Sequence record: PV231354.1 | DNA: 64,000 nucleotides | Strand: one strand, 5' to 3' | Shown here: positions 4,421 through 56,555 of the stretch, piece after piece | Numbering within the stretch: position 1 is the first letter of the stretch | Layout of the letters: each line of letters opens with the position of its first letter | The notes under the pieces: generated by a model | What the model saw: the letters and a program-made list of their open reading frames with translations, nothing else | What the model was told of the DNA's origin: nothing | The model's database searches: none | Position numbers and translations under genes: made by a program

Positions 4421-4481
4421 TCGTGAATCTTGACGTCCCTGGATGAACGTGGCATCCAGGGACACTCCCATTCATGGTTAA
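4421..4481 (+). promoter_or_regulatory. Phage promoter element TCGTGAATCTTGAC followed by an 11-bp inverted repeat and an ATGGTTAA half-site
   Basis: Motif at 4421-4434; GTCCCTGGATG/CATCCAGGGAC at 4435-4445/4453-4463; ATGGTTAA at 4474-4481, just before the ATG at 4488. Confidence 0.65.
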
Positions 4482-4487
4482 TCCCCG

Positions 4488-5144
4488 ATGCCGAGCTATC
4501 CGTTCCACGACGTCCTGTTCCCCGAGACCATCAGCTACGGCTCCTCGGGCGGCCCGAAGTTCAAGACCACGATCTTCCAGGCCGATAGCGGCTTCGAGCA
4601 GCGCAACAAGGACTGGAGCGACGTGCGGCACGAGTACGACGTCGCCCAGTCGATCCGCTCGACCGAGGACATGGCCGAGCTTCGCGCCTTCTTCATGGCC
4701 CGCAACGGCCGCGCCCACGGCTTCCGCTACAAGGACTGGGGCGACTTCCAACTCAAGAACCAGTTGATCGGTGTCGGCGACGGCCTGACCAAGGCCTTCC
4801 AGATCGTCAAGACCTACACCAGCATCGGTCAGGGCGGGACCGAGTTCACCTACACCCGTAATATCCGCAAGCCCAAGTGGGACTCGATCGCGGGTGTCAA
4901 GGTCGGTCCCGTGGTCCAGGTCGCCCCGACCAACTACGAGGTCGACTACGCCACCGGCATCATGACCTTCGTGGTCGCCCCGCCGGCCGACGCCCCGGTC
5001 ACCATCGGCCTGGGCGAGTTCCACGTCCCCGTCCGCTTCGACACCGACTTCATGGATGTCACCCAGGAATTCTGGATGCGCGAGACGTGGCCCAACATCC
5101 CGATCATCGAAATCCGTGACTGGCAAGAGGTCACCACGCCGTGA
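4488..5144 (+). CDS. GTA-like distal tail protein (DUF2460/TIGR02217 family)
   Basis: FHDVLFP...SGFEQRN...FFMARNGRAHGFRYKDWGDF...FHVPVRFDTD signature. Confidence 0.9.
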   Translation: MPSYPFHDVLFPETISYGSSGGPKFKTTIFQADSGFEQRNKDWSDVRHEYDVAQSIRSTEDMAELRAFFMARNGRAHGFRYKDWGDFQLKNQLIGVGDGLTKAFQIVKTYTSIGQGGTEFTYTRNIRKPKWDSIAGVKVGPVVQVAPTNYEVDYATGIMTFVVAPPADAPVTIGLGEFHVPVRFDTDFMDVTQEFWMRETWPNIPIIEIRDWQEVTTP

Positions 5145-6766
5145 AGGACGTTCCTGAGCAACTGATGCAGCACCTCCAGCAGGAGGTGACGACGCTGGCG
5201 ACGGTGATCACGGTCGTGCGTCAGGACGGCAAGGCCTTCTTCATGACCGATCATGACCGGCCGATCAAGTTCGAGAACCAGACCTTCGTCCCCTACGACT
5301 CCTACCAGCGCACCGCGATCCTGATGTCGTCGGAACTGGAAGTCGACACCGCCGACATCACCGCCTTCCTGACCTCGGACGGCGTGACGCGCGATGACGT
5401 GGCCTCGGGCCTGTTCGACTACGCCGCCATCAAGGTCCAGTTGATCAACTACGAAAACCCCGAGTACGGCGCGATCCTGTTGCGCAAGGGCACCTTCGGC
5501 GAAGTGGTCATGAATCAGGACGAGACCTTCTCGGCCGAAATCCGGGGCATGACCCAGGTCCTGACCTATCGCGTCGGCGAGTCCTACGCGCCCGAGTGCC
5601 GGGCCGACCTGGGCGACAAGCGCTGCAAGATCGGCCTTATGCCGCAGGAGTGGCAGGGCAACAAGTATTATCCGACCAGCACCTGCGTGCTGGGCGAGGT
5701 TGACCCGGCCAACTCCTTCGTCAATCTCGACGTCATCAACTGGAGCTTTGAGGCCGGCGACCTCAACACCGTCGTCACCGCGCCGGCCGGCTGGGTGGCC
5801 TACGGCGATCCGACCAGCCGCTGGGTCTACAAGCACGACTGGTACAACCTCTCCCGGCCGCAACTGGGCGACAAGTTCATCGCCGCGACCCGCACGTCGA
5901 TCGACGACAAGCAGGAGATCGCCGGCATCTTCCAGGACATCAGCCTCGTGTCGGCCGGCGTCTCCGAAGCCGACCTCGACACCGGCCTCTGCCGCGTGCG
6001 CTACAAGTCGTTCGTCGCCTGCCTCAATAACCGCGCCCAGTCGCGCGAGCGCCTGACCTGCATCAAGGCCGACGGCTCGGTCGAAACGATCTGGGACACC
6101 GGAGAGAAGAAGTACCCCGAGGATCGCTGGGTCGCGGTCAATGCCGACGACGTCCTGATCCCGTCCGGCACCCGCGTCCTGCGCATCGACCTGTGGTCCA
6201 AGAAGCGCAACGTCCACGAGGAGGGCGTGGCCTACGACGGCATCAAGGCCTCGATCAACCTCCCGGACGGCACGGCCGGCAACGCCGACGTCTACGGCGG
6301 GGTGATGTTCAAGTGCATCCAGGCCGGCGTGAGCGGCGATACCCCGCCGGTGTGGACCAACGAGATCGGAGCCACCTTCAACGACGGCACCGTGATCTGG
6401 CAGTGCGTCACCAACTACAAGCGGGTGGGCACGGTTGACACCGTCGACTCCAACAAGTCGTTCACCCCCGACGGGGTTGGCGAGCAGGGCGGCTTCTACG
6501 ACGGCGGCGTCCTCTACTGGGAGACGGGCCGCAACGCCGGCCGCGCTCAGGAGATCAAGTTCTGGTCGAGTGGGGTGTTCACCCTGTTCCAGCGGACCTA
6601 CTACCCGATCGAGCCGGGTGACCGCTTCGTCTGCTACCCAGGCTGCGACAAGCGCCGCACCACCTGCGCCGACAAGTTCAACAACATCCTCAACTTCCGC
6701 GCCGAGCCCGACGTGCCTGGCCAGGACATCTACTACCGCACGCCCAACGCGCCGGAGCAGGAATGA
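5141..6766 (+). CDS. GTA-like baseplate hub protein (DUF2163/BR0599 family) with an internal inserted domain
   Basis: N-terminal TTLATVITVVRQDG...FMTDHDR, CRADLGDKRC, C-terminal GCDKRRTTCADKFNNILNFRAEP; overlaps the upstream gene (GTGA). Confidence 0.88.
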   Translation: MKDVPEQLMQHLQQEVTTLATVITVVRQDGKAFFMTDHDRPIKFENQTFVPYDSYQRTAILMSSELEVDTADITAFLTSDGVTRDDVASGLFDYAAIKVQLINYENPEYGAILLRKGTFGEVVMNQDETFSAEIRGMTQVLTYRVGESYAPECRADLGDKRCKIGLMPQEWQGNKYYPTSTCVLGEVDPANSFVNLDVINWSFEAGDLNTVVTAPAGWVAYGDPTSRWVYKHDWYNLSRPQLGDKFIAATRTSIDDKQEIAGIFQDISLVSAGVSEADLDTGLCRVRYKSFVACLNNRAQSRERLTCIKADGSVETIWDTGEKKYPEDRWVAVNADDVLIPSGTRVLRIDLWSKKRNVHEEGVAYDGIKASINLPDGTAGNADVYGGVMFKCIQAGVSGDTPPVWTNEIGATFNDGTVIWQCVTNYKRVGTVDTVDSNKSFTPDGVGEQGGFYDGGVLYWETGRNAGRAQEIKFWSSGVFTLFQRTYYPIEPGDRFVCYPGCDKRRTTCADKFNNILNFRAEPDVPGQDIYYRTPNAPEQE

Positions 6767-7188
6767 CCCGCGACGACATCGTGACCGAAGCGCGCCGCTA
6801 TGTCGCGCTCCAGACCCCCTGGCGCCACCGGGGCCGCACCGAGCGCGGCCTCGACTGCATCGGGCTGGCCGTGATGATCTTCGAGAAGTTCAACCTGGAG
6901 TACATGGACCAGGACGGCTATGCCCGCTCGCCCGACGGCGAGAAGTTCGTCGACGTCATCAAGCAGCACATGACGATCGCCAACCCCACCGACCTCAAGC
7001 CCGGCATGCTGCTGCTGTTCAACGACGACACCCGACCCTGCCATGTCGGCATCCTGGCGCTCCAGCACGGACGCCTGTCCCTGATCCACGCGACCGCCGA
7101 CAAGAAGCGGACGGTCGAAGAACCCTATGATCGTCGGTATTCCGCCCGCTTCCGGATGGCGTTCGATTTCCCCGGCGTTGAGGACTAA
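6763..7188 (+). CDS. Tail-associated NlpC/P60 peptidase (TIGR02219-like)
   Basis: TPWRHRGR...GLDCIGL...HVGIL...LIHA catalytic Cys/His motifs; conserved position in GTA-like tail modules. Confidence 0.9.
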   Translation: MTRDDIVTEARRYVALQTPWRHRGRTERGLDCIGLAVMIFEKFNLEYMDQDGYARSPDGEKFVDVIKQHMTIANPTDLKPGMLLLFNDDTRPCHVGILALQHGRLSLIHATADKKRTVEEPYDRRYSARFRMAFDFPGVED

Positions 7189-7190
7189 GC

Positions 7191-10100
7191 ATGGGCGCAG
7201 CGATTGCTCTTCCGATTATCTCGGCTATCGTCAGCACGGCGATCAGCTACGTGTTCCCCGACGAGGGGCCGCGCCTGCGCGACGCCAAGGTCTCGGCCTC
7301 GACCTACGGCAACGTGATCCCGGAGATTTATGGTACCGCCCGCGTGGGCGGCAACATGATCTGGTCCAAGCCCTTCACCGAGAAGAAGAAGAAAAAGCGC
7401 GCCGGCAAAGGCGGCTCCTACTACAACCAGTACACGTATTTCTGCGACTTCGCCATGGGGTTCTGTAAGGGGCCGGTGAAGGAAATTCGCCGCATCTGGG
7501 CCGACGGCAAGGTGATCTACGACACCACCGGCGGCTCGGAGGTGGTCGACAACAACAAGTACCGCTTCCGCTTCTACCCCGGCGACGAAGAGCAGCTTCC
7601 TGACAGCATCGTCTCGGAGGACAAGGGTCTCGACTACGCCCCGGCCTACCGGGGCCTCTGCTATGTCGTGTTCGACGACTTCGCCCTGGCCGACTTCGGC
7701 AACCGCATCCCCCAGATCATGGCCGAGGTCTATGCCGGCGACGAAGGCGGTGCGGCGATCACCGACGTCACGCCGCTCTCGGGCGACGTCTCGCCCTCGC
7801 CGCCGTCCGGCAGCTATCAACTCGATCAGGCGATCATCGACACCGACCGGGGCTACTTCTACCTCGTCGACGGCTTGGCTGACCCGCGCGGCGGCGTGCT
7901 GCGCCGCTTCAAGCTGTCCGACGGCTTCGAAGATCGCCGCGAGGTGGTGCTCGTGCCACCGACCACGCCGCCGTCGGTCTATGACAGCGCCGGCCTGACC
8001 TCCGTTCGCGGCCTGACCTCGAAGGGTGAACTCCTCTGCGTGTTCGGCGGGGTCAACAACTACATGCGGATCGAGAAGCTCGATCCCTATTCCTGGGCCT
8101 CGCTCGGCACGCTGGGTCGCAGCTTCCCGTTCGAGAACGAAAGCCGCCCCGACTGGAGTCTGGAGTTCTCCAACACCAACTTCAAGACCGGCCGCGACGA
8201 CAAGGGCAACTACTATACCCTGACCCTGGGCGTGTTCGGTGAGTACAACATCTTCGACCCGACCTCGATGTCGTACCTGTCCAAGGGGCACATGGCGGGC
8301 TGGAACGGCCCCGGCACGCCGATGCAGATCACCGCTCGCCAGGGCGGCCCCGCGAGCGCCCGGCGCTTCTACCACGTCACCTACAATGGCGGCCCGACCC
8401 TGTCGGTGTGCAGTCTGGGCGAGACGCTCTACAACCACCCCATGCCGCATCCGGGCGCGGCCGGCGCGACCGGCTGGTGCTTCTGGGACGAGGGCGACCC
8501 CGGCGTCGTCTTCTTCTTCACGGACGGCAACCAGGACCGCTATCTCGCCAAGTGGTCGGAAACCACCGGCGCCCTGGTCTGGCAGACCAAGCTCTCCGAC
8601 ACGCCCTACTGCGGCTACCCGGTCTGGGGCATGGAAGCGCGGATCAAGGACAACGAGCTTCACTGGGTCTACGATCAGCGCCTGTTCTCGATCAACACCG
8701 CGACGGGCAAGTGGATCGACCGGACCTTCGACCAGGACTTCTACAAGACCGACAACGACAAGACGGCCGATCAGGTCAACGACGGCGAGAAGGGCCTGGA
8801 GCTTCCGCGCGAGATTAACGACGACTACGTCATCTATGACCCGCGCCGCAACATCGTCATCGGCCTGGGATCGCCGCAGGTCCAGAACGGCATCGTCCAC
8901 GTCGGGGCCTATACCGGCCAGCGGACCAATGTCGGGCGCATCGTCGAGCAGCTTCTGACCACCACCGGTCAGATGACCTCGAACGACTTCGACCTGACGC
9001 CGCTCTACGAAATCCCGGTGCGCGGCTACGGCTACGCGACCTCGACCGACGTCAAGTCGATCATCTCTGAGTTGCGTAACCTCTTCATGTTCGACCTCGT
9101 GGAGAGCGACGGCAAGCTCTTCGCCCGCGTGCGCGGCGACCAGACGGCCGACGTCGAAATCCCCTGGCAGATGCTGGGCTCCCAGAGCGGTCCCAGCGAC
9201 GACAAGGCCGACTACTGGAAGGAGACGCGGATGTCGGAGTCCGATCTCCCCTCGGCGATCGACCTGACTTACATGAACATCGACGACGACTATAACCCGT
9301 CGACGGCCAAGTCCAAGCGCATCTCGGCCCCGGTCGCCACCATGCTGTCGCGCCAGCAGGTCAAGACCGAGTGCAACCTCGTCATGGACGCGACCGAGGC
9401 GAAGAACCGCGTCAACGTCATGCTCTACACCCAGTGGGACGAGCGCACCCAGCACAACACGGCCCTGCCCTGGCGCTATGCCTACCTCGACGCCTCGGAC
9501 CTGATCTCGGTAACGATGGAGGACGGCCGCAACTACTTCGACCGGATCGGCTCGATCGAGTTCGGCGCTGACTTCTCCTCGCGCCTGGAGACCTACGGGA
9601 CCGACAGCGGGGCCTATCTCTCCGACAAGGTCGGTGAGGGCGGTGGCGCCGGGCGTCCGACCGTGGTCAACGCGCCCAAGCCCGTCGTGGGCTTCATCAT
9701 GAACACCCCGCTCCTGCGCGACACCCACGACAGCGGCGGCAACTACTCCAACTGGTACAGCGCCATCGGCGCCGGCGCGCCCGGCAAGTTCTTTGGCGGC
9801 ACGATGTACAAGTCCGCCAACAGCCAGGACTACGTCGACCTCTACCAGGAGACCGAGAGCGCTGAATGGGGCACGGTGGTGGGTGTCGTGCCGCCGGCGT
9901 CGCACGGCTGGTTCGCGCTCGACTGGGAGACCAAGATCACCATCATCCCGGCGGTCGAGTTCTTCGAATTGGAATCGATCACCGACGACGAACTCTGGGA
10001 AGGCCAGAACGCCGTCATCGTCGGCGACGAAATCATGCAGTTCCGGGACGCGGTCGAGAACGCCGATGGCTCCTGGACGATCTGGAACCTGCTGCGCGGC

Positions 10101-10676
10101 CGGCGCGGAACGCAATACGCTTGCGACAAGCACGTCAAGGGCGAGAAGTTCATCTTCCTCGACGAGCGGTCGATCGAGTTCCAGGCCGAGAACCTGGACA
10201 CCGCCGGCCTCAACCGCTGGTACAAGGCGGTCGGTTCGGGCATGTCCCTGTTCGAGGCCGATCCGATCCAACTGAACTACCAACCCCGCGACCTCATGCC
10301 CTATCGCCCGGCCGACATCCGCCGGGCGGTCGCGGGTGGCGACGTCACGGTGACCTGGAAGCGTCGCACGCGGTTCACCGCCACCATGAAGGACGGGACG
10401 GGCGTGGTGCCCCTCAACGAGGGCTCCGAAGCCTACGAGGCCTACGTACTGGCCGCGCCTTTCTCGGGCGACGAATCCCGTCAAGACCCGCCCGCTGCGT
10501 ACCTGCGGAAATACGACCTGACGAGCCCGACTTTCACCTACACGGCGGCCGAGCAAACGGCGGACGGGTATGACGTGAATCTTGACACTCTCCACGTCGT
10601 GCTCTATCAGTTGAGTTCGGTTGTCGGCCGGGGTTTCCCCGCCGCGCGCTCGATTGAGTCCTGGCAGGACTTCTAA
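7191..10676 (+). CDS. Central tail tip / host-specificity protein (GTA-like, phage-tail_3 family)
   Basis: STYGNVIPEIYGTARVGGNMIW, PAYRGLCYVVF...FGNRIPQI, later NLLRGRRGT motifs. Confidence 0.88.
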   Translation: MGAAIALPIISAIVSTAISYVFPDEGPRLRDAKVSASTYGNVIPEIYGTARVGGNMIWSKPFTEKKKKKRAGKGGSYYNQYTYFCDFAMGFCKGPVKEIRRIWADGKVIYDTTGGSEVVDNNKYRFRFYPGDEEQLPDSIVSEDKGLDYAPAYRGLCYVVFDDFALADFGNRIPQIMAEVYAGDEGGAAITDVTPLSGDVSPSPPSGSYQLDQAIIDTDRGYFYLVDGLADPRGGVLRRFKLSDGFEDRREVVLVPPTTPPSVYDSAGLTSVRGLTSKGELLCVFGGVNNYMRIEKLDPYSWASLGTLGRSFPFENESRPDWSLEFSNTNFKTGRDDKGNYYTLTLGVFGEYNIFDPTSMSYLSKGHMAGWNGPGTPMQITARQGGPASARRFYHVTYNGGPTLSVCSLGETLYNHPMPHPGAAGATGWCFWDEGDPGVVFFFTDGNQDRYLAKWSETTGALVWQTKLSDTPYCGYPVWGMEARIKDNELHWVYDQRLFSINTATGKWIDRTFDQDFYKTDNDKTADQVNDGEKGLELPREINDDYVIYDPRRNIVIGLGSPQVQNGIVHVGAYTGQRTNVGRIVEQLLTTTGQMTSNDFDLTPLYEIPVRGYGYATSTDVKSIISELRNLFMFDLVESDGKLFARVRGDQTADVEIPWQMLGSQSGPSDDKADYWKETRMSESDLPSAIDLTYMNIDDDYNPSTAKSKRISAPVATMLSRQQVKTECNLVMDATEAKNRVNVMLYTQWDERTQHNTALPWRYAYLDASDLISVTMEDGRNYFDRIGSIEFGADFSSRLETYGTDSGAYLSDKVGEGGGAGRPTVVNAPKPVVGFIMNTPLLRDTHDSGGNYSNWYSAIGAGAPGKFFGGTMYKSANSQDYVDLYQETESAEWGTVVGVVPPASHGWFALDWETKITIIPAVEFFELESITDDELWEGQNAVIVGDEIMQFRDAVENADGSWTIWNLLRGRRGTQYACDKHVKGEKFIFLDERSIEFQAENLDTAGLNRWYKAVGSGMSLFEADPIQLNYQPRDLMPYRPADIRRAVAGGDVTVTWKRRTRFTATMKDGTGVVPLNEGSEAYEAYVLAAPFSGDESRQDPPAAYLRKYDLTSPTFTYTAAEQTADGYDVNLDTLHVVLYQLSSVVGRGFPAARSIESWQDF
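10574..10610 (+). promoter_or_regulatory. Internal promoter (CGTGAATCTTGACA-17-TATCAG) for the tail fibre genes
   Basis: Copy of the repeated promoter motif inside the 3' end of the tip gene, with a 17-bp spacer to a -10-like hexamer. Confidence 0.55.
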
Positions 10677-10747
10677 GCACCCCTTCCACAAATCCGTGAC
10701 CCCAGCCTCGGCCGGGGTTGCCCTCTTGTCATAAAAGCCGTGGAACG

Positions 10748-16323: not shown

Positions 16324-16340
16324 GGCCTATACGCTTCGCC

Positions 16341-16386: not shown

Positions 16387-16402
16387 GTTTTCGGGCATAA
16401 TG

Positions 16403-16440
16403 TCGTGAATCTTGACATCGGCACAAATCCAGGCCATGGT
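16403..16440 (+). promoter_or_regulatory. Lysis cassette promoter (TCGTGAATCTTGACA-17-CATGGT)
   Basis: Exact copy of the repeated motif upstream of the endolysin. Confidence 0.62.
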
Positions 16441-18492: not shown

Positions 18493-18514
18493 ACCTGCGA
18501 CATCCGGTCGCATG

Positions 18515-18552
18515 TCGTGATCCTTGACATATCGACGTTCTTGCACTATGGT
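18515..18552 (+). promoter_or_regulatory. Sigma70-type promoter (TCGTGATCCTTGACA-17-TATGGT)
   Basis: Variant of the repeated motif with a 17-bp spacer; no credible ORF downstream before the terminator. Confidence 0.65.
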
Positions 18553-18553
18553 C

Positions 18554-18819
18554 GCGCTTCTTCGACGGCATCCCACCGTCCCACATGGCTCGCGACCCAC
18601 CGTTCGCAGGGACACGATCGCGACCAAGGCGGTAGCCGGAACGATGCTAGACCGCAAGGTCAAGCCTCCGGAACACGCAGCAGCCGGCTGGAACGCTAGG
18701 CTCCTACGTCCAAACGGGGTAGAGGCTTCCTGAGCCTTCGGGCGAGAGACCCCACCACCTCGAAAGAGGTTCACGCGTGATGCGGAGAAGGGCTGAAAAG
18801 CCCAAGTGTCTGGAAGTGC
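18554..18819 (+). ncRNA. Putative structured non-coding RNA (~265 nt), family unknown
   Basis: Lies between a promoter and an intrinsic terminator; hairpins capped by GCAA, UUCG and two GAAA tetraloops. Confidence 0.6.
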
Positions 18820-18820
18820 A

Positions 18821-18858
18821 GAAGACCCCGCCGGAGCAATCCGGCGGGGTCTTTTTCT
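18821..18858 (+). terminator. Intrinsic terminator
   Basis: AAGACCCCGCCGGA-GCAA-TCCGGCGGGGTCTT plus a T tract. Confidence 0.85.
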
Positions 18859-18879
18859 GTCTGGAGCGGAGGAGCCCGA

Positions 18880-19671
18880 CTAGGCGCGCGCGCGGGCCTT
18901 GGAGGCGACCGGCATCGCCGGCGCCAGGGCGCCCACCTTGCCGACCACCTTGCCCAGGATCACGATCTTGCTGGCCTCGACGTCGATGTGGTCCTTCAGG
19001 TCCGCGTCGTAGATGCGATAGGGGCCGGTCTTGCTCGGGCGCGTGACGTGCGCCACCTGCATGGTCTTGTTGAGCCCGTAGACGAACTCGCCGCCGGCCG
19101 CGTTGGGCTCGACCTCGCGGCGGACCACCGCCATGTCACCCGGATTGAGGCCGGGGGCGAAGTCGTGGATCGCCGCCAGGGCCAGATCGGTGGGCTCGGC
19201 TTCGAAGCGCTCGCGCAGCCAGTCCGGATCGAGGTTCCAGGTCCGCAGGCGCTGGAACTCGCCGGTGCGCGGCTTGAAGGTCAGTTCCTCGACCGGGTTG
19301 GGCGAGCCGACCCCGAAGGTGATGTACTCGGGGGTGGTCTTCAAGACGTGAGCGATCTGCTCCAGCACATCGATGTGTGGCTTGACGCTGTCGGACTCGT
19401 ACATGATGTAGGCGGTGCGCGCCAGGGGCCGACGCTCGCCAGCCTGCTTCGGCTCCCAGCCGGGTTTGGTGCTGACGTCCTTGCGCGAATTGCTCTGCTG
19501 GGTCAGGTAGACCCGCGACGCGACTTGTTCCTGGGTCAGGCCCAGGCCCATGCGGCAGGCGGTAATGCGCTGGCCGATGGTGCGAGGATGCGCGAGATCG
19601 GCATCCTTGTGGATCAGGGAACGAGACCGGTGCGCAGCAACGCCCGGCTTCATCTCGATCACGGTTTGCAT
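18880..19671 (-). CDS. XRE-family HTH transcriptional regulator with an S24-like C-terminal domain (repressor-like)
   Basis: IGQRITACRMGLGLTQEQVA...YESDSVKP..LEQIAHVLKTTPEYITFG HTH; C-terminal GDMAVV...ILGKVVG. Confidence 0.75.
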   Translation of the reverse strand: MQTVIEMKPGVAAHRSRSLIHKDADLAHPRTIGQRITACRMGLGLTQEQVASRVYLTQQSNSRKDVSTKPGWEPKQAGERRPLARTAYIMYESDSVKPHIDVLEQIAHVLKTTPEYITFGVGSPNPVEELTFKPRTGEFQRLRTWNLDPDWLRERFEAEPTDLALAAIHDFAPGLNPGDMAVVRREVEPNAAGGEFVYGLNKTMQVAHVTRPSKTGPYRIYDADLKDHIDVEASKIVILGKVVGKVGALAPAMPVASKARARA

Positions 19672-24790: not shown

Positions 24791-24866
24791 GGGGTCTCGT
24801 TCTCGCGACAAGGCGCGATGCGTTAAAAAGCCCTGAGAAATCAGGGCCTTAAGATGAAAGCAAAGG

Positions 24867-24910
24867 ATGGTTAAGATAGCCTGAGGGGTCCCGAAAGTCA
24901 AGATTCACGA
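24867..24910 (-). promoter_or_regulatory. nrdA promoter (TCGTGAATCTTGACT-17-TATCTT) with an overlapping TTAACCAT
   Basis: Reverse-strand copy of the repeated motif at 24897-24910. Confidence 0.65.
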
Positions 24911-24952
24911 CAGTCGCGAACCCCTCAAAGATTCCTTGACAGACCCTGGGAT

Positions 24953-25812: not shown

Positions 25813-25904
25813 GGGCGGCTCCGGGGGATGTCGTGTCTCCCGACAAGACATGTCAGGATTCACGACATCGGTCAACGTGGTTAATGGGCGGGTGCGCGCT
25901 TTTG

Positions 25905-32024: not shown

Positions 32025-32096
32025 CGGGGCGATCTCGTTCGGGAGTGTCTTGTTAACCAAGTTCCGGATGGGTGTCAAGATTCACGACATCGAAAG

Positions 32097-36065: not shown

Positions 36066-36119
36066 GAGGTATGGTTAACCGATGTCGTGAATCACGTCAA
36101 GAAATGTCGTCGGGGACGA

Positions 36120-36888: not shown

Positions 36889-38589
36889 TTACAGGTGCCA
36901 GCGCGAGCCGGTGAAGGTGATCAGCGCGCGCTTGCCGTTCGGGTATTGCACGCAGTGGGTGTGCGCCCAGGACGAGGGACCCTTGTTGTAGCCCATGTCG
37001 AGCAGGGAGGTCGTCCCGGTGTTGTAGGCGCTCTCGTAGATGCCCGGCGAATGGGTATGGCCGAACGTCACCTTCGGCCCCAGTTCGGCGAACTGCTTGA
37101 TGTTGCCGCGCGAGCCGTTGGTCCCGTTGTGGCCGTGGACCGAGTGCTCGACCTTGCCCTTCATGTGGGATTGGTCCTGGAAGAGGAACTTGACCCCCTC
37201 GCAGGCCCAGGCCGTGAACTTGTTCTGCATGACCCAGGAGAAGATCGAGAACCCGCTTTCGCGCTCGCGGATCGAGCGGTATTTGCGCGCCTGACATTCC
37301 AGGAAGAACTCGGCGTTGACCGGGTCCTGGCGGTAGTCGGCCGTCTTCAGCCACTTCTCAAGCGCCAGATCGTGGTTGCTCTCGACCACCGCGATCTCGG
37401 TGTCGGGGTGGTCGGCCGCCAGGACCGACATGAACATCGCCACCTCGCGAAGCTCTTCCTCGACGCTCTCGGTCCCGTTGATGTAGAGCCAGTAGCGGTC
37501 GTGGGGGTCGGAGATGTTGTGGTGGTTGCGCGCCCGGAAGTCCGAGACGTCGTGCAGGAACACGTTCTCGGGCCGCAGGACGTCGATCATGCTGGGCGTC
37601 GCCTGCTTGACCCAGACGCGGCCGTTCGCCGTGCGCTGCTCGGTGGGGAAGAACCCGAACGTGCCGGCCGAGACCTGGGGGTCGATCTGGGCGACGTGGA
37701 TGTCGCCCGGCGTCAGGGCGGTGACCCGGTGGGCCTCGGTGACCTTGCCGTCCTGGACGAAGCGGTCCAGGTCGTAGAACGAGCCGTCCTTGTCGCCCAG
37801 CAGGTGGCGGCAGAAGAACGTGCCGTCCTCGTCGATCTCGACCAGGACAGCCCCGAGTTGGTGGTGGTGCTGGGCCTTCTGGCCCGCCAGCTTGGGAATG
37901 TAGTTCGGCTTGGTGACGGCGCCGGTCGTCATGTTCTGCTTGGACGGCTGGTCCTTCATCGTCGCGATGCTGGCCAGTTGGACCTTGGCGTGCGGGAAGA
38001 TGCCCCAGCGCTCACCCGAGTAGGTCTTCAGGCCTGAGATCGGGTTGACGTTGGTCGGCAGGGCGTTGATGTTGCCCAGGAACTCGACGCGGTCGCCCAG
38101 TTGGACGCGATCGACGATCAGGTAGTCCATGACGCGCTCGTGGTAGACCGAGGCGTGCTTGGCGTGATCTTCGAACAGGCGCTTGGAGTAGGTGAAGCCG
38201 GCGATCATGATGTCGCACGGTGCGTCCTGGCGCAGGTATTCGGCGTAGGCCTCCAGGTTGTCCACGAACTCGTCATGGACGTAGGTGGCGTCCTGGGCCG
38301 ACGACAGAATGAAGCGCCGGCGCCCGGTGTCGGGGCCGACCGGGATGACCCGCGCTTCCGGGATCGGGCGGTGCGAGAACGGGTCCTTGCGCATCGCGTA
38401 GAGGCGATTTTGCAGGGTCGTGCGCTTGACGCTGTACTTGCGGGAGAACGCCCGCTGGCCGCCGGCCTTCTTGACCATCGCCAGCAGTTCGATCGGCTCG
38501 ACCGAGTAGATGTCGAAGGGGCCGTCCTTGGGCAGGGTCACCTTCATCCGCTTGGCGGCCTTGGAGGCGTGTTCGAACTCAGCCGGCAT
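36889..38589 (-). CDS. Putative calcineurin-like metallophosphoesterase with an N-terminal HTH-like region
   Basis: GDIH, FLHD, VESNHD, VHGHNG, FGHTHSP motifs. Confidence 0.7.
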   Translation of the reverse strand: MPAEFEHASKAAKRMKVTLPKDGPFDIYSVEPIELLAMVKKAGGQRAFSRKYSVKRTTLQNRLYAMRKDPFSHRPIPEARVIPVGPDTGRRRFILSSAQDATYVHDEFVDNLEAYAEYLRQDAPCDIMIAGFTYSKRLFEDHAKHASVYHERVMDYLIVDRVQLGDRVEFLGNINALPTNVNPISGLKTYSGERWGIFPHAKVQLASIATMKDQPSKQNMTTGAVTKPNYIPKLAGQKAQHHHQLGAVLVEIDEDGTFFCRHLLGDKDGSFYDLDRFVQDGKVTEAHRVTALTPGDIHVAQIDPQVSAGTFGFFPTEQRTANGRVWVKQATPSMIDVLRPENVFLHDVSDFRARNHHNISDPHDRYWLYINGTESVEEELREVAMFMSVLAADHPDTEIAVVESNHDLALEKWLKTADYRQDPVNAEFFLECQARKYRSIRERESGFSIFSWVMQNKFTAWACEGVKFLFQDQSHMKGKVEHSVHGHNGTNGSRGNIKQFAELGPKVTFGHTHSPGIYESAYNTGTTSLLDMGYNKGPSSWAHTHCVQYPNGKRALITFTGSRWHL

Positions 38590-39280
38590 AGAGAAGCTCC
38601 GGTTTGGCGCTGACGGGCTTGGACCAGTCCCAGACGAACCACGCGTAGGCGAAGCGCGGCGCGCCCTTGGTCCCCTCGATCCAGCGGGGGCGATGGCGAA
38701 GGGTGACCTTCGCGGCGAAGGCGGGGTGATCGAAGAGGTCGGCGCGCGAGCGCGCGGCGTCCCATTCGTGGCGGCAGAGGAAGGCGACGAAGCCCTTGTC
38801 GGCTTCCATCAGCTTCAGGGCATGACGGGCGGCGCGCTCGGCGTCCTTACCGTAGGGCGGGTTGGAGATGATGGCGTCCGGGCGCGCCGGCAGCGGGGTG
38901 ACCTTGCGTTCCTTGCCCTCGTCGTCGAGGACCACCGCCGGCCGGGCCTTCAGCGCGCCCAGGCGATCCAGGTCGTCCGGCGTGAGCTTGAAGAAGTCCT
39001 CGACCGCGTCCACGTCGAAGCCCTCGTAGCGATGGATGTCCGTGGAAAGGACCTCCTGCACGTAGGGCCGCAGCGGGTTGGCGATCGCGCCGTTGCCCGC
39101 GAAGGGCTCCCAGACATAGAAGCCGGCGAACTCGTCGCCCATGGCCTCGATCAGCGCGTCGAACGCGGGACGAGGCGTCGGATAGAAATCCAAGGGGTTC
39201 CTGGCATAGCCCGAGGCGCCCAGCATGGAGGGGTCTTTGCGACCGGCATCGGAGAGAGACATGGCCAGGAGGGATGTCAT
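38579..39280 (-). CDS. Amino-type (N6-adenine/N4-cytosine) DNA methyltransferase
   Basis: DFYPTP, WEPFAGNG (SAM-binding), IISNPPY (catalytic motif IV). Confidence 0.8.
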   Translation of the reverse strand: MTSLLAMSLSDAGRKDPSMLGASGYARNPLDFYPTPRPAFDALIEAMGDEFAGFYVWEPFAGNGAIANPLRPYVQEVLSTDIHRYEGFDVDAVEDFFKLTPDDLDRLGALKARPAVVLDDEGKERKVTPLPARPDAIISNPPYGKDAERAARHALKLMEADKGFVAFLCRHEWDAARSRADLFDHPAFAAKVTLRHRPRWIEGTKGAPRFAYAWFVWDWSKPVSAKPELLYAG

Positions 39281-39339
39281 GGTTAACGAAGGGTGTCAAG
39301 ATTCACGACATTGACTGTCGTGACGCACCACGCTACACA
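39279..39339. promoter_or_regulatory. Back-to-back promoters: leftward TCGTGAATCTTGAC (39295-39308) and rightward TTGACT-17-TACACA (39311-39339)
   Basis: Motifs read directly; ATGGTTAAC at 39279-39287. Confidence 0.6.
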
Positions 39340-40404: not shown

Positions 40405-40760
40405 AGGCATCGTTGTAATTCGGACAACGGAAACGGCGGCAAGACAGGGGTGCGATTCCCCTCGCCTCCACCATGAGCATCCGGCGCTGGGAGTACGCGA
40501 CTCCTGGGCAGGGAGTGTTACCCTGGCGGGCTGCGGCCCGAGCCAAAGGTAGCCGGGTGCTCATGACGGGGGCGATCAGCTTCGATTGGCGCATGTGACT
40601 GGAAGACGCAACGGTGGGTGACCTCCAGGCCAGCTTGCTGGTGATCGGGTCGAAGCAACAGAAATGTCGCTGCAAATGACAACGCTCCGTTCGCGGTGCG
40701 TGAAGCCATCGCCGCCTAATAAGCGGTAGAGGCGTGTCCCGGCGGACGCGCGTGTCACAA
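40405..40760 (+). ncRNA. ssrA: Circularly permuted (two-piece) tmRNA; tag ANDNAPFAVREAIAA
   Basis: Acceptor piece ends AGGGG-TGCGATT-CCCCT-CGCCTCC-A-CCA (40473); coding piece starts GGGGGCG (40568), giving G3.U70; tag ORF 40672-40719 followed by a second TAA; outer ends approximate. Confidence 0.9.
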
Positions 40761-41458: not shown

Positions 41459-41462
41459 GCTG

Positions 41463-41500
41463 TCGTGAATCTTGACACCTAGGGTCGAGCTAGGCATTAT
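41463..41500 (+). promoter_or_regulatory. Promoter TCGTGAATCTTGACA-17-CATTAT
   Basis: Exact motif copy upstream of the cadherin-repeat gene. Confidence 0.65.
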
Positions 41501-45237: not shown

Positions 45238-45319
45238 GGGTTGGGACACTTACTCAAACCGAGCAGGCTGTCTACCATCTACCCTTGCTAGTAGAAATGT
45301 CGGTTTTACAACACAGACG

Positions 45320-47658: not shown

Positions 47659-47669
47659 GGGTCCGCACG

Positions 47670-47745
47670 TGGTTAACGCGCGGCAATGTCGCCCATGACG
47701 ACGTCACATGTCAAGATTCATGACTTGACCCAAGGCGTTAACCAT
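47670..47745. promoter_or_regulatory. Divergent promoter region with TCATGAATCTTGAC (minus) and two TTAACC half-sites
   Basis: Motif at 47710-47723; TGGTTAAC 47670-47677; TTAACCAT 47738-47745. Confidence 0.55.
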
Positions 47746-47796
47746 GGCACGGTCGGGGCACGGCTGAGAGATCAGCCGGTCACAAGGAGAACTACC

Positions 47797-48901: not shown

Positions 48902-48905
48902 TGGC

Positions 48906-49361: not shown

Positions 49362-49363
49362 GA

Positions 49364-49813: not shown

Positions 49814-49873
49814 GGGGCGATCCTTCTGAAGTGGGAGAGGGGCCGGCGAACCGGCCCCTCGGGGTGGGAGCGA

Positions 49874-51496: not shown

Positions 51497-51517
51497 GGGA
51501 GACTCCTTGCTCGCGGC

Positions 51518-53647
51518 CTAGTAGCTGCCGAACTTCAGGGTGAGAGGGATGGTGCGAATCAGCGCTTCCAGGGCCTTGGTGCAGGCGGTGACCTGCTCGG
51601 TCGAGGTCGCGTGGTTCGTGTTGTCGAGGAACTTGCGGATCGGGTGGTTGGACGTGGCGTTCAGCTTGGTATGACCCTCCTCGAACGTCTTGGTCAGTTC
51701 CGAGCGCGGCGGCGCCTTGAACTGCCCGTCCACCTCGTAGAGCGCCTTGATGAAGGAGCGCTCGCGCTCGGTCCACTCGACGAGGCCGGCGGCCAGCAGC
51801 GGCTTGACCGCGCCGAAGTAGGCCGCGACCGACGACTTCATCCGCGTCAGGCGGTCGAAATCGGCCGGGCACTTCTCGATCGCCCGGTTGTAGAAGCCGT
51901 AGGCCGTCGACGAGGTCGACAGCTTCTGCACCGCCACCACGCAGTCATCCAGGCTGACCTTGTGCTTGGCCTGGATCGCCGCGTCGATCGCCTCGCGCAT
52001 GGTCGGGACCTTGGCGTCCTCGACGTGCTTCTGGGCGGTGGGCGAGGCGATGTAGATGTGCTTGATGCCGTACTTGTTGGCGACGACGAAGACGTCCTCG
52101 GCCTTCTTGCGGTACTGGTCCGACGACACCCAGGCCACGGTCCCGGCAGGGAAGGTCTCCACGCCGGTCACCGCCATCTGCTCGCCCGCGCGCTTGGCCA
52201 GGGCCAGACCCCGGATCGGCGGCACATAGGCGGGCGCGTCCTTGCTGACCTTGTCGCGGCGCGGGACCTCGCCCTTGAGCGTGGCCACGTCGATGTCCTC
52301 GAACTTGGCGGTCGGCAGGGCGCAGTTCCAGAAGGCCTTGTCCCGGTCGTAGCCGAGCATGAAGACCCCGTCCTTCAGGTTCTTGCTCTCCAGGTAGAGG
52401 CGCAGGATGCGCGCAAGGCGGCGCGTCTCGCTCTGGGAGAACTCGCGCTTGGTCGAGTCGTCGCGCGACGGGTCGAGCAGGTCGGAGATGTCGCGCAGGA
52501 CCAGGAAGTGGGTTTCGGCCTTCTGGCTCAGGTCGAGCGTGTTCTCGATCCGGTAGCCCCAGCGCTCGCGGTGCTGGTCGAACGAGGCCTTGTAGAGGCA
52601 GGCCACGCCAGGGAAGGAGATCGTCGTGCTTTCCAGGCCCGTGGCCGGGTGCTTGGGCTTGCTGCTGATGAACGGCGGGCGCAGCTTGTTGTGGGTCGCG
52701 AAGAACTCGGTGACCGACTGGATGTCCTTGATCTTGACCCAGATCGCCGCCTCGACGTCTTGGCTGATCGTGCCGATGATGTCTTGCAGGGCCTTGACCG
52801 CTTCGGGCTTGTACTGGATTTCTTCCCGCGACGGGATGGGCTCGACCGTGCCCATCGGCACCGTGATCAGCCACTTGCGGCCGTTGTCGTGGGGCAGGCT
52901 CAGACCGCCCTTGGCGGCCAGCGGGTAGATGGCGCAGCCCTGGCGCACGTTCCACGTCGCCGGCAGGGCCGAGTTCTCGTAGGCGGCCCAGGTGCCGTCG
53001 GCGGCTTCGAACTGCGGCATGCCCAGCGGCTGGCCCAGGTCGATGTTGCTGTCGTACATGGGGATGAAGCCCATGGCGACGTTCTTGACGGCGCGCTCGA
53101 AGGAGGCGAAGTCGGTGGGGTTGACCGCGACGGTGACGCGCACGCCGGCCGGCTCGGAGCAGTCCTCGGTGCCCTGGAGCATGACGCGCGGCACGCCGCC
53201 CTTGCCGATCGCGGCGGTGTAGTGGCGCACGACGTCGCCGTCGTAGCAGGACAGGGCGAATTGGGAGGTGTAGGCGAACGGGCTCTTGGAGCCCAGGCCG
53301 AAGGCGCCGGTGAGATCGTCGGTCTCGTCCTTGTCCGACTCGAACAGGGTCGAGTAGAGGTGCATGACCTTGGCGTGGTCCATGCCGGGGCCGTAGTCGC
53401 GCACGTAGAATTCGGGGCGCATTTCGCTGGGGACGTGGACGAAGAAGCTGCCGGGGTAGCCGGCGACGATATGGGCGTCCTGGGCGTTCGAGCAGATTTC
53501 CCGCACCAGCGAGCCGATCTTGTCCGAGTAGAGCCCGTCGATCAGCATCCGGAACGCTTTGCCAGACGCCTTGATCTTGAACTCTTGCTCCTCCTGAACG
53601 CCGATGGTTTCGAGGAAGACCGGTTCGGTTGCAAGCCGCATTATCAA
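51518..53647 (-). CDS. rIIA: rIIA-like protein (N-terminal GHKL ATPase)
   Basis: LYSDK..LVREICSNAQDAH, VRDYGPG, TGAFGLGSKSPFAY. Confidence 0.9.
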   Translation of the reverse strand: MIMRLATEPVFLETIGVQEEQEFKIKASGKAFRMLIDGLYSDKIGSLVREICSNAQDAHIVAGYPGSFFVHVPSEMRPEFYVRDYGPGMDHAKVMHLYSTLFESDKDETDDLTGAFGLGSKSPFAYTSQFALSCYDGDVVRHYTAAIGKGGVPRVMLQGTEDCSEPAGVRVTVAVNPTDFASFERAVKNVAMGFIPMYDSNIDLGQPLGMPQFEAADGTWAAYENSALPATWNVRQGCAIYPLAAKGGLSLPHDNGRKWLITVPMGTVEPIPSREEIQYKPEAVKALQDIIGTISQDVEAAIWVKIKDIQSVTEFFATHNKLRPPFISSKPKHPATGLESTTISFPGVACLYKASFDQHRERWGYRIENTLDLSQKAETHFLVLRDISDLLDPSRDDSTKREFSQSETRRLARILRLYLESKNLKDGVFMLGYDRDKAFWNCALPTAKFEDIDVATLKGEVPRRDKVSKDAPAYVPPIRGLALAKRAGEQMAVTGVETFPAGTVAWVSSDQYRKKAEDVFVVANKYGIKHIYIASPTAQKHVEDAKVPTMREAIDAAIQAKHKVSLDDCVVAVQKLSTSSTAYGFYNRAIEKCPADFDRLTRMKSSVAAYFGAVKPLLAAGLVEWTERERSFIKALYEVDGQFKAPPRSELTKTFEEGHTKLNATSNHPIRKFLDNTNHATSTEQVTACTKALEALIRTIPLTLKFGSY

Positions 53648-53734
53648 CTCCAGAGGAGAGTGGTTAGGTGGATGTCGACGATCCTTCTATCCAGGGCATC
53701 CGGTTCTGTCAACACACTCGCTCCGGCTTTTTGG

Positions 53735-53772
53735 TCGTGAATCTTGACGTTCTCGCACGGGTCAGGCACAAT
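53735..53772 (+). promoter_or_regulatory. Promoter TCGTGAATCTTGACG...CACAAT
   Basis: Exact motif copy at the strand switch. Confidence 0.6.
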
Positions 53773-53778
53773 TTTCTC

Positions 53779-54027
53779 ATGTGGTCAATCCGCAACATCA
53801 CGACCGAAGCCTCCCACTCGATTCGCACCTGCACCGCCAAGGACTACCCGTGGCCTGAGCGGGGGTCGGAGGGCTGCATTTGTCGCGACCCTGGCGCGCG
53901 CCGTGACCGGGATTTCATGCTGCTGATCGACCGCCATGGCGAGATTCAATGGTACGCGAGGACGACATGCCCGATCCACGGCCCGAAGATCACGACGGTG
54001 GACGTCGAAACAAAATCCACGACCTGA
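53779..54027 (+). CDS. Hypothetical Cys-containing protein (possibly leaderless)
   Basis: ATG a few nt after the -10 box; overlaps the next ORF. Confidence 0.4.
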   Translation: MWSIRNITTEASHSIRTCTAKDYPWPERGSEGCICRDPGARRDRDFMLLIDRHGEIQWYARTTCPIHGPKITTVDVETKSTT

Positions 54028-54374
54028 TCGTCGGCGACCCGCGCGAGGACCCGCGCTACAATCGCAAGCTCAGCAACCGCGACAAGACCGCCTTCCTCTG
54101 CGGCGTCCTGCGCCACCCGGCCCAGGCGTTCGACCTGGACCTGCCGTTCCCGGTCGAGGACTGGGTCGCCTCGGACGACAACTCCCTGATCGTCGCGGGC
54201 CTCTACCTGTCGGACCTGCGGCTCCAGTTCTATGACGCCCTGGAGGTCAAGCCCGACGACGAGCACGGCTTCGTGCGCCAGGGCGAGGCCGAGTTCTGGC
54301 ACCACGCCTTCAACGTCATGGTCGAGCGCCGCAGCCACGGCGTGCTGGTCTCCGACGGGCGCGTGCTCAATTGA
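53949..54374 (+). CDS. Hypothetical protein (start uncertain)
   Basis: GC3-rich ORF coupled to the next gene. Confidence 0.55.
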   Translation: MVREDDMPDPRPEDHDGGRRNKIHDLIVGDPREDPRYNRKLSNRDKTAFLCGVLRHPAQAFDLDLPFPVEDWVASDDNSLIVAGLYLSDLRLQFYDALEVKPDDEHGFVRQGEAEFWHHAFNVMVERRSHGVLVSDGRVLN

Positions 54375-54742
54375 CCCTGCTCTATGACGGCGCCCTGGAA
54401 GGCAACTGCGTCGGCCGCTTCGTGCGCGCCGGCCAGACCTTCGACGTCATCCGCCCCGGCTACGACGCCCAAGGGGTCAAGCGCCAGACCTGGACCCAGA
54501 TCATCCACGACGGCGTGCCGGTCTTCGAGGTCAAGGTCCGCACCGACCTCGACAACGTGATCGACCGCTTCGACGCGCTCTGGGAACGCCACATCGGCGA
54601 TGACGACGACCTGCTGGCCCGCGCCCTGACCTCGGTCAAGCGCGAGCGGGCCTCCAAGTTCCGCGATGGCAAGGCCGGCGTCGCGCCCGCCCCGACCCTG
54701 GCCCATGACGAGCATCCCTACCCGCCGCATTATGTCGCATAA
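54371..54742 (+). CDS. Hypothetical protein
   Basis: TTGA overlap start; GC3-rich. Confidence 0.6.
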   Translation: MTLLYDGALEGNCVGRFVRAGQTFDVIRPGYDAQGVKRQTWTQIIHDGVPVFEVKVRTDLDNVIDRFDALWERHIGDDDDLLARALTSVKRERASKFRDGKAGVAPAPTLAHDEHPYPPHYVA

Positions 54743-54816
54743 TGTTGGCGTGAGACTGTTGACATCTCTGATTTTGTGACATAGAAGCCTCCTCGACGAC
54801 AACGAAGGAGGCTTTC

Positions 54817-55443
54817 ATGCCCAAGCGGATCAAAGGCAAGCGTATCGCCCTGCACCAAGCCAAGGTGCTGGACGCCCAAGAGTTCCAGATGGTTCTCGAC
54901 CGCGCCGAGCAGGGTGACAACCCGCTGCGTGACCGCGTGCTCTTCAAGCTCTCCTTCTACTGCGGCATGCGTGTCGCCGAGATCGCCGGCCTGGAGTGGC
55001 GCAAGCACCTCCTGGACGCCAGCGGCCGGCTGCGCCCCGCCATCCACATCACCCACGACATCGGCAAGAACGCCGTCGCCCGCCACGTCCCGATCGAGGC
55101 GTCGCTGGCGGCTGACCTGCGCGCCCTGCGCAAGGAACGCGGCGGCGATCGCTTCGTTGTCTACCCGCTGCGCGCCTCGATGCGCGGTGGTCCCGAGAAG
55201 ACCGACGCCAACACCCTGGCTCAATACATGCGCCGCATGTACCGCGAGATCGGGCTGGACGGCGCCTCGTCGCACTCGGGCCGCCGCACCTTCATCACCG
55301 ATCTGGCGCGCAAGGCGAACATGTTCGACTGCTCGCTCCGGGACATCCAGGAGATGGTCGGGCACCGGCGGATCGAAACGACCGGGACCTATATCGAGAC
55401 GAGCCCCCGCCAGGACCGGCTCGTCAACATGGTCCTGCGATAG
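54817..55443 (+). CDS. Tyrosine recombinase/integrase (catalytic domain only)
   Basis: GMRVAEI (R), SHSGRRTF (HxxR), VGHRRI (H), TTGTY (Y); only 208 aa. Confidence 0.88.
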
Positions 55444-55452
55444 GGGGCGGCG

Positions 55453-55863
55453 ATGACCTTCATCTGCACCGAACTGGACAACGCCACCCCCGTCGACCTG
55501 GACGCGGCCGAGGCCCTCCTCGCCACGACCCCGCGCAAGCGCGCCAACTTCGCCAAGGCCAAGGGTGTCTGCCGCGAGTGCGGCGCGCCCAAGCACGAGC
55601 GCCGCCTGGGCGCGGACTTCTGCTCGGCCCGCTGCCGCTCGGACTTCCACAACCGGGCCAAGATGGAAGGCGCCTCGATCGTCCACATCATCAAGCGCTG
55701 GCGCCGTTACCGCCGCCCCGGCGATTTCGCCCTGATGACCAAGATGGCTGATGACCTGATCCGCATGGACAAGGCCCTGAAGCGCGACTTCTACCCCGAT
55801 CCGCCGGCCACCGCCCACGCCAAGGTCGTCGCCACCAATATCGCCGGCCGCCGCCGCGCCTGA
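55453..55863 (+). CDS. Hypothetical zinc-finger protein
   Basis: CREC...FCSARC motif. Confidence 0.62.
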   Translation: MTFICTELDNATPVDLDAAEALLATTPRKRANFAKAKGVCRECGAPKHERRLGADFCSARCRSDFHNRAKMEGASIVHIIKRWRRYRRPGDFALMTKMADDLIRMDKALKRDFYPDPPATAHAKVVATNIAGRRRA

Positions 55864-55878
55864 AGTAAGGAGTACAGC

Positions 55879-56133
55879 TTGAACCAACCCACCGAGAAGC
55901 CCGTGTTCGCCACCGAGAGCGGCGGTTACCTTTTCCAGGTCTACGCCGCACCGGCTGACCACGGCCGCGCCTACCTGGGCTTCTGCGACGGCGTCCTGAG
56001 CGTCAGCGGCGACACCGTCGATGTCACCCTGCGCGCCCTGGCCCGCAAGCACGCCGAGCCCAAGCGCACGGCCCAGGTCATCGACTTCACCGCCGAAAAG
56101 CTCAAGCGCCTGGGCGCGGTGGTCGCGGCCTGA
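55879..56133 (+). CDS. Hypothetical protein
   Basis: AAGGAG RBS, TTG start. Confidence 0.58.
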   Translation: MNQPTEKPVFATESGGYLFQVYAAPADHGRAYLGFCDGVLSVSGDTVDVTLRALARKHAEPKRTAQVIDFTAEKLKRLGAVVAA

Positions 56134-56522
56134 TGGCGTCTCCTGTCGAAGAGCGCCTGGACCCGACGATCCTGGCCCCGCTCATCTACCGCCACTTCTA
56201 CAACGGTCCCGTCGGCGGCGCGGCCTTCCGCCTCGCGCGGATCATCCGCAACCACGCCATGGGCCTGCCGATCCTGTCGTTCGCCGAGGTGCTCGACGAG
56301 TACCTGAACGCCAAGCTCGGACTCAATGACAGCGCCGACCCCGAGATCAGGGCGGAGAACGAGCGCACCCTCAAGACCGCCCGCGCGGCGTTCTGGAAGG
56401 CGCTCAACGGCATAGGCGATCCCGAGCACGTCGACGGACTGGTCCGCTATGCCCAGGCCAAGAGCCTGAGCGAGTGCATCGCCGAGACCCTTGAAAAACG
56501 TCGTCCGCAACAACTGTCATGA
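56133..56522 (+). CDS. Hypothetical protein
   Basis: TGATG coupling with the upstream gene. Confidence 0.6.
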   Translation: MASPVEERLDPTILAPLIYRHFYNGPVGGAAFRLARIIRNHAMGLPILSFAEVLDEYLNAKLGLNDSADPEIRAENERTLKTARAAFWKALNGIGDPEHVDGLVRYAQAKSLSECIAETLEKRRPQQLS

Positions 56523-56555
56523 ATCTTGACACCTGTCGGGAAAGGGGGCTAGATG
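56517..56555 (+). promoter_or_regulatory. Promoter TCATGAATCTTGACA...TAGAT
   Basis: Motif variant upstream of the primase-like gene. Confidence 0.55.

Follow-up and report, generated by a model that had tools for sequence, protein, structure and literature searches.

Promoters that belong to one temporal or functional class are marked in several phages by a short conserved element located at approximately -50 to -30, with an activator site beside or over the -35 region, and a phage protein reads this element in cooperation with the host holoenzyme. The middle promoters of T4 (MotA box), the Pm and late promoters of Mu (Mor and C), and the lambda promoters PRM (CI bound at OR2) and PRE (CII) are of this kind. 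Dispersed sites are also represented by the "stoperators" of mycobacteriophage L5, which are asymmetric 13-bp repressor sites found across the genome, one of them overlapping a -35 element. In Caulobacter, the housekeeping promoters recognized by the σ70-type factor σ73 have the consensus TTGACGS-N10-14-GCTANAWC. Here we analyzed a repeated putative promoter element, named the class A box, in a stretch of 64,000 nucleotides (the window, to which all positions refer unless given in kb or stated otherwise). The window is an exact match to bases 62001-126000 of Caulobacter phage RBC8 (PV231354.1), a 223-kb phiCbK-like siphophage near CcrRogue. The whole RBC8 genome was pieced together from annotated stretches, and it contains the window letter for letter.

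The first-pass annotation of the window had listed a repeated 14-bp element, in which a GANTC methylation site is joined to the -35 box, together with several named variants. All of these were found, with a single shift of coordinate from 10574 to 10573. The exact 14-mer is present seven times (4421+, 16403+, 24897-, 32074-, 39295-, 41463+ and 53735+), compared to 0.00 chance matches in dinucleotide shuffles of the window, and 14 matches are obtained when up to two mismatches are allowed (0.34 expected). Twelve of these 14 are placed as promoters, including the variant copies at 10573+ (ACGTG), 18515+ (GATCC, which destroys the GANTC site), 25852- (CTGAC), and 47710- and 56517+ (both TCATG). 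The remaining two, 5718+ and 33744+, were rejected as chance matches, being located deep in coding sequence and lacking the TTGAC/-10 layout. Each of the 12 copies is directed at a downstream feature. Ten of them lie in intergenic gaps, another falls within the final 104 nt of the host-specificity gene, and the copy at 53735+ is situated inside an annotated open reading frame whose start is probably wrong.

In the whole RBC8 genome, 21 good copies were identified between 19.9 and 118.5 kb, which is the region of the structural, lysis and replication modules, and one more was located at 207.6 kb. Twenty of the 21 precede a gene of the same orientation, whose start codon is 0-190 nt away from the predicted transcription start site; the other one (18515+) faces the convergent gene RBC8_107c. 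No copy was found in the 10.2-kb terminal repeats of RBC8, and the region of 126-205 kb contains only two chance-like matches with two mismatches each, both without the GAATC core. The regulon can thus not be called phage-wide, as had been suggested, and the box belongs to one of at least two promoter families. The accompanying suggestion that it spans both structural and replication genes agrees well with the placement of the 21 copies, which adds the lysis genes. Among viral contigs, the exact 16-mer occurs in several copies only in cultured phiCbK-like genomes; in public sequencing runs, the window stretch matched only wastewater metagenome contigs, at 6-12% of words. Its copy number, placement and orientation mark the class A box as a genuine signature of the promoters of a single gene class, which would comprise about 20 structural, lysis and replication operons.

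The layout of these sites is of the σ70 type. The -35 hexamer begins with TTGAC in 20 of the 21 RBC8 copies and with CTGAC in one, and a -10 region can be observed at a 17-bp spacer after TTGACA, with enrichment of G at -14 (17/21, P ~6e-6), A at -11 (15/21, P ~1e-7) and T at -7 (14/21, P ~5e-7). The -10-like hexamer that had been noticed 17 bp after TTGAC is therefore confirmed over the 21 genome copies, and this layout, together with the placement before co-oriented genes, upholds the initial view of the box as a promoter element. The -10 element is weak, T at -12 being present in only 10 of the 21 copies; the promoters of the second family, class B (see below), have CTAGAAG. The σ73 housekeeping promoters share with class A the TTGAC of the -35 element, the 17-bp hexamer spacing, G at -14, A at -11 and T at -7. 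Class A differs from them in having ten more invariant bases right upstream of the -35 element, which are specific to one phage clade and one gene class. On these features, the class A promoters are laid out like σ70 promoters, and combine a perfect -35 with a -10 element of only moderate quality.

The extent of the predicted functional unit was deduced from 20 orthologous promoter pairs of RBC8 and phiCbK. At each position from -45 to -30, 18-20 pairs agree, whereas in the upstream flank only 10-15 do (50-75%), and no conservation is observed upstream of -46. A second conservation peak is found at -14 to -10, with -12 and -11 identical in all 20 pairs. The invariant block from -45 to -30 and this second peak indicate that the functional unit consists of the 16-nt box and the -10 hexamer. 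The invariant part from -45 to -36 adjoins TTGACA directly, as would be the case for a protein site abutting the -35 element. It does not resemble the A/T-rich tract at -40 to -60 of an UP element, which the alpha-CTD reads, as only WWT at -39 to -37 is A/T-rich and the sequence from -45 to -40 is GTCGTG.

The analysis was extended to seven phages of the Dolichocephalovirinae, namely RBC8, phiCbK, Bajun, CcrBL9 (BL9), Colossus, Marchewka and Kikimora. Box-like sites were counted with a loose pattern, for which a reversed-genome control gave 0-3 sites per genome. The orthologous promoters of the seven phages have TG-N5-WWTC-TTGAC in common, with TG at -46/-45 (CG in Bajun), WWTC at -39 to -36, and a lineage-specific N5. 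The form TG-TCGTG-AATC is found in both RBC8 and phiCbK, with 23 and 25 box-like sites, of which 22 and 21, respectively, carry GANTC at -40 to -36; Bajun has CG-TCGYG-AATC (20 sites, 16 with GANTC). The corresponding forms are TG-ACGCR-WWTC in CcrBL9 (25 sites, GANTC in 3), TG-CCAGN-WWTC in Colossus (21 sites, GANTC in 8), TG-MCGTA-WWTC in Marchewka (27 sites, GANTC in 2) and TG-TTGTA-AWTC in Kikimora (14 sites, GANTC in 0). GANTC is near-fixed only in the phiCbK/RBC8/Bajun clade. It is not the conserved feature of the element, since the orthologous promoters of Colossus, CcrBL9, Marchewka and Kikimora mostly lack it.

In a tree of the seven phages based on seven concatenated proteins, Bajun, RBC8 and phiCbK are grouped together (100/100), as are Colossus, Marchewka and Kikimora (100/100), and BL9 stands apart. 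The box of Bajun, a phage of Brevundimonas, is of the phiCbK type, but other boxes are found in Colossus and BL9, which have C. vibrioides as their host just as phiCbK does. Across this set, the box variant tracks the phylogeny of the phage and not the host. About 20 dispersed sites have changed together in each lineage, a pattern that would be expected from a co-evolving reader encoded by the phage.

The class B family was found by k-mer enrichment in the RBC8 territory that lacks class A. Its form is TTGGCG..GAGAG-TG-TTGACAG, followed after about 11 nt by GCTAGAAG at -10 and then by a conserved CGACGACAACG..AGGAGG leader. Approximately 27 copies are located at 115.7-202.7 kb of RBC8, serving the small-gene arms, and three of them are within the window (53708-, 54757+ and 60765+). 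Of the two predicted promoter families in the phiCbK-like phages, one is marked by the class A box.

Our preferred explanation, to which we assign a probability of about 0.58, is that the class A box is the site for a phage-encoded regulator that abuts the -35 element and is read together with the host holoenzyme. The host RNA polymerase with its primary sigma factor would read TTGACA (-35 to -30), the 17-bp spacer and the rather weak -10 element, and the ten bases GTCGTGAATC (-45 to -36) would form a lineage-specific recognition element right upstream of the -35. A phage-encoded DNA-binding regulator would bind GTCGTGAATC beside sigma region 4, and would thereby set the structural, lysis and replication operons apart from the small-gene arms. 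We infer from the alignments both the promoter activity and the existence, identity and sign of such a factor. An activator is favored over a repressor at odds of about three to two, because the -10 hexamers are weak. The proposed arrangement resembles that of the T4 middle, Mu and lambda promoters, in which a short element in the same region likewise marks one class and is read by a phage protein together with the host holoenzyme; unlike in those promoters, where the -35 is absent or poor, the -35 of class A is a perfect consensus.

Several points weigh against this explanation. The perfect-consensus -35 is unusual for activator-dependent promoters, and would fit a repressor or the lack of any factor. 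The upstream part of class B also varies between lineages, and a lineage-specific upstream sequence is thus not unique to class A. In the portion of the phiCbK time course that was used here, the replication genes peak by 15 min, and the structural and lysis genes later (PMC10688885). Since both sets carry the box, it cannot set the timing alone, and other inputs would be needed. Finally, the fold match of RBC8_148, one of the two best candidate readers, is weak (E ~3e-3, with a mean predicted local distance difference test score of 64).

The search for candidate readers covered sigma factors and helix-turn-helix (HTH) proteins. No Sigma70_r2 match over the cut-off was found in four phage genomes. 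Four HTH proteins were found in every one of the seven phages: RBC8_107c, RBC8_148, RBC8_149 and TgrL, an early factor already known. RBC8_148 (60821-61420, +) neighbors RBC8_149 (61422-61838, +; HTH_3), and both lie downstream of a class B-type promoter (60765). The three phages of the clade that shares the box, RBC8, phiCbK and Bajun, agree fully in the putative recognition helix of RBC8_149, and each other clade has a different one. The structural model of RBC8_148, a candidate reader or partner, has a confident winged-helix core (residues ~60-150), and its best structural matches are MarR, ArsR and PadR regulators, with weak E-values. This conserved pair provides the best candidate readers, on suggestive grounds only. 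RBC8_107c (18880-19671, -), which has an XRE-type HTH and a C-terminal domain and matches phage repressor families, is a further candidate regulator. Additionally, RBC8_120c showed a weak HTH-level match to Mor; this protein is not conserved outside the clade.

Alternatively, the 17-mer from -46 to -30 may be an operator for a dimeric phage repressor, which would lie over the -35 element and hold otherwise strong promoters off until a signal is received. We regard this as unlikely, albeit tenable. The 17-mer is 6/8 dyad-symmetric in RBC8 and Colossus (P ~0.004 each, post hoc), but only 4-5/8 in Marchewka, BL9 and Bajun, and the central bases, which break the symmetry, vary no more than the outer bases do. 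The perfect -35 hexamer would suit such an operator, as would the recurrence of the half-site as a near-palindrome in the spacer of the methylase promoter, a classic repressor position, and the presence of conserved repressor-like XRE and MarR-like proteins in all seven phages. However, with weak -10 hexamers the promoters may not be strong alone, and the phages are lytic, and each infection requires expression of these operons. The L5 stoperators are similar to class A in that both are many oriented copies of an asymmetric site including the complement of TTGACA; the L5 sites halt elongation inside the transcription units of a temperate phage, whereas every class A copy is at a promoter of a lytic phage. 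It could also be proposed that no dedicated factor exists, and that an extended -35 or UP-like element is read by the host RNA polymerase and kept uniform through selection for strength or copying among promoters. The WWTC beside TTGAC is found in each of the seven phages and resembles a proximal UP subsite in being A/T-rich, the consensus -35 hexamer would be consistent with this view, and the class B promoters have a uniform upstream sequence as well. The distal part of the box is nevertheless G/C-rich and differs among the C. vibrioides phages (TGTCGTG, TGCCAG and TGACGC), and the joint change of the dispersed orthologous sites in each lineage would be hard to explain without a co-evolving reader, which makes a promoter without its own factor distinctly improbable.

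The remaining explanations concern the GANTC site. All but one of the 21 RBC8 copies carry it at -40 to -36, as GAATC or GATTC, and it could be methylated by host CcrM and read by host GcrA. The class A promoters resemble the GcrA/CcrM-dependent promoters in that GANTC is located inside a σ70-type promoter, on which GcrA is known to act (PMC4647560), and the phage encodes a GcrA homolog. Host GcrA, however, prefers YGAKTCK, and among the 32 NGANTCN contexts AGATTCA was ranked 32nd and served as a "low-ranked" mutant site (PMC4647560); the class A context, TGAATCT, is this very sequence on the other strand, and lies outside YGAKTCK. The known GcrA boxes are centred at -20, -30 or +5 to +30, with none beyond ~-32 upstream, which was put down to linker length (PMC9976885), whereas the class A GANTC is centred at -38. 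Moreover, the swarmer cells that the phage infects are without GcrA (PMC3556154), and sister phage lineages on the same host lack the site. Control of class A by the host GcrA/CcrM pair is thus highly improbable. The first-pass annotation had doubted that the GAATC context would suit host GcrA and had considered a phage factor to be plausible, and the analysis supports it on both counts, with a phage factor as the more plausible reader. The phage factor could be RBC8_230c, encoded outside the window, which aligns with full-length host GcrA and has a well-kept sigma-interacting domain and a diverged DNA-binding domain. Anchored on sigma domain 2, it might read GAATC at -38, possibly in a methylation-dependent manner, and help to open the weak -10; in this way the phage would bring its own, orthogonal version of the host GcrA/CcrM module into swarmer cells, where GcrA is missing. 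A full-length homolog is present in RBC8, phiCbK and Bajun, exactly where GAATC is near-fixed (22/23, 21/25 and 16/20, respectively); none is found in Colossus and BL9, only the N-terminal domain is found in Marchewka and Kikimora, and these four phages have 0-8 such sites. The gene is located at the start of the small-gene (presumed early) arm, and weak -10 hexamers would gain from a factor that promotes open complex formation (PMC4647560). We still consider this role of RBC8_230c rather unlikely. The three phages form one clade (100/100), so that the association represents a single evolutionary event of little weight, and the same promoter architecture is found in Colossus and BL9, without any GcrA homolog. 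The position of the box is again upstream of the limit for host GcrA, and the copy at 18515, although kept in phiCbK, has no GANTC. The N of GANTC is just as invariant as its G, A, T and C, and so are the two flanks, which is more than methylation alone, or GcrA alone, would require. No N6_N4_Mtase (CcrM-family) domain was detected in the four phage genomes searched, RBC8 included. Genome-wide, GANTC has an observed/expected ratio of 0.66-0.86 in all seven phages, which is mildly rarer than expected but within the range of palindromes of the same composition, and over the seven phages this bias shows no link to the presence of a GcrA homolog. The narrower proposal, that the GcrA homolog of the phiCbK/RBC8/Bajun clade has a host-orthogonal specificity and reads adenine-methylated TGAATCT at -38 from sigma domain 2, appears doubtful to improbable; if true, the structural, lysis and replication promoters would be sensitive both to the phage GcrA and to how the phage DNA is methylated. 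The GANTC in the box is most likely a lineage-specific by-product, and not a switch, which arose because the clade fixed G and AA at -40 to -38.

Other observations concerning methylation and GANTC were made during the analysis. RBC8_122c, a C5 cytosine methylase, is the only clear methylase of the phage. RBC8_125c (38579-39280, -), which is conserved in all seven phages, matches part of a PHROG profile named "DNA methyltransferase" (E 6.5e-55); no Pfam or NCBIfam family was matched, and the protein can be considered a putative methylase only. The terminal repeats of RBC8 (genome positions 1-10202 and 213069-223270) contain 32-36 GANTC sites per 10 kb, compared to ~10 elsewhere, and are thus three times denser; the motifs TTTTGTTAAGA and TTAAGGTTAAC recur in these repeats. 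In Colossus and Marchewka, GGAGTCACGTTTC, which contains a GANTC site, recurs 9-17 times (loci L013-L055), often in inverted pairs or in a position before start codons that is similar to a ribosome-binding region. The CGTGAWTCACG palindromes of the same two phages were rejected as relatives of the box, because they are parts of hairpins or terminators.

The individual class A promoters predicted in the window are distributed over both strands. On the plus strand, the promoter at 4420-4458 consists of the 16-nt box with TTGACG, a 17-bp spacer and the -10 CATCCA, in the gap between the tape-measure gene (end 4403) and RBC8_096 (start 4488). The ACGTG variant at 10572-10610 (+), with the -10 TATCAG, is the copy at the end of the host-specificity gene; it is directed at RBC8_100 (10748), and orthologous sites are present in Colossus and Marchewka. 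The promoter at 16402-16440 (+) has its predicted start 30 nt before the endolysin gene (16477) and would serve the lysis cassette. The GATCC variant at 18514-18552 (+), with TTGACA-N17-TATGGT, has no annotated gene after it and runs antisense into RBC8_107c. It is the sole class A copy without its own gene, and its orientation toward this conserved XRE-type gene suggests an antisense or convergent-transcription circuit at 18514-19671.

The following promoters are on the minus strand. The one at 24873-24911 (-), with TTGACT-N17-TATCTT, is located before the gene of ribonucleotide reductase alpha (start 24790). In the 76-nt leader of this operon (24795-24860, -), a T run comes after a hairpin, and the two may form an attenuator or a regulatory stem; no Rfam family was matched there. 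The CTGACA variant at 25828-25866 (-) lies before RBC8_113c (start 25812), and the promoter at 32050-32088 (-), with the -10 TAACAA, before the exonuclease-like RBC8_119c (start 32024). The "rearranged" form reported at 36085 was found to be real. It corresponds to a minus-strand promoter, TTTC-TTGACG-N17-TAACCA (36073-36105, -), before the leaderless ATG (36065) of the C5 cytosine methylase gene, and its spacer contains TCGTGAATC (36086-36094, +) in inverted orientation, as a near-palindrome around GANTC. The promoter at 39271-39309 (-) has TTAACCAT in its spacer and precedes RBC8_125c and the T5 A1-like RBC8_124c. The annotated ATG of RBC8_125c (39280) lies within this spacer and is probably mis-annotated; the ATG at 39262 would give a near-leaderless mRNA. 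The TCATG variant at 47686-47724 (-) is situated before the helicase gene RBC8_131c (start 47658).

The other plus-strand promoters are found in the second half of the window. The one at 41462-41500 (+), with the -10 CATTAT, is located right after a terminator-like hairpin, 22 nt before the cadherin-like RBC8_127 (41529), and has no phiCbK counterpart. The promoter at 53734-53772 (+) is part of a divergent site beside rIIA and is directed at RBC8_140 (53967). The annotated start of RBC8_139 (53668) lies upstream of the promoter expected to drive this gene, and is probably mis-annotated (53668-53967). Finally, the TCATG variant at 56516-56554 (+) precedes RBC8_146 (56590), which encodes a protein of 1218 aa.

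A further regulatory signal was observed near these promoters. TTAACCA, a half-site of the CtrA type, is present in 25 copies in the RBC8 genome. Between -60 and +110 it accompanies 10 of the 21 class A promoters, against an expectation of 0.4. The half-site is located in the spacer, at the -10, close to the start site or some 20 nt before the box, as exemplified in the window at 39277-39284, 47661-47667 and 4473-4479. This distribution fits the reported control of phiCbK genes by CtrA (PMC9437464), and CtrA may be one further input that shapes the timing of the class A genes. It is also worth mentioning that a permuted (two-piece) transfer-messenger RNA gene, which is unannotated in the RBC8 record, was detected at 40411-40719 (+; Rfam, 89.8 bits), flanked by a tRNA-Cys gene and two tRNA-Met genes.

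No phiCbK promoters were defined by Gill et al. (2012), and none of the papers searched contained the motif in connection with Caulobacter. The box is of a known general kind and is apparently undescribed for phiCbK, which is the standard phage of the Caulobacter cell-cycle model. Several gene starts would be corrected with the aid of the promoter map, and the predicted class A and class B promoters would provide portable, phage-specific promoters. The box also illustrates that an eye-catching CcrM site need not imply epigenetic control. The two promoter families, together with a box that changes in step over seven phages, provide a direct handle for the regulator that would separate the gene classes of the phiCbK-like phages.

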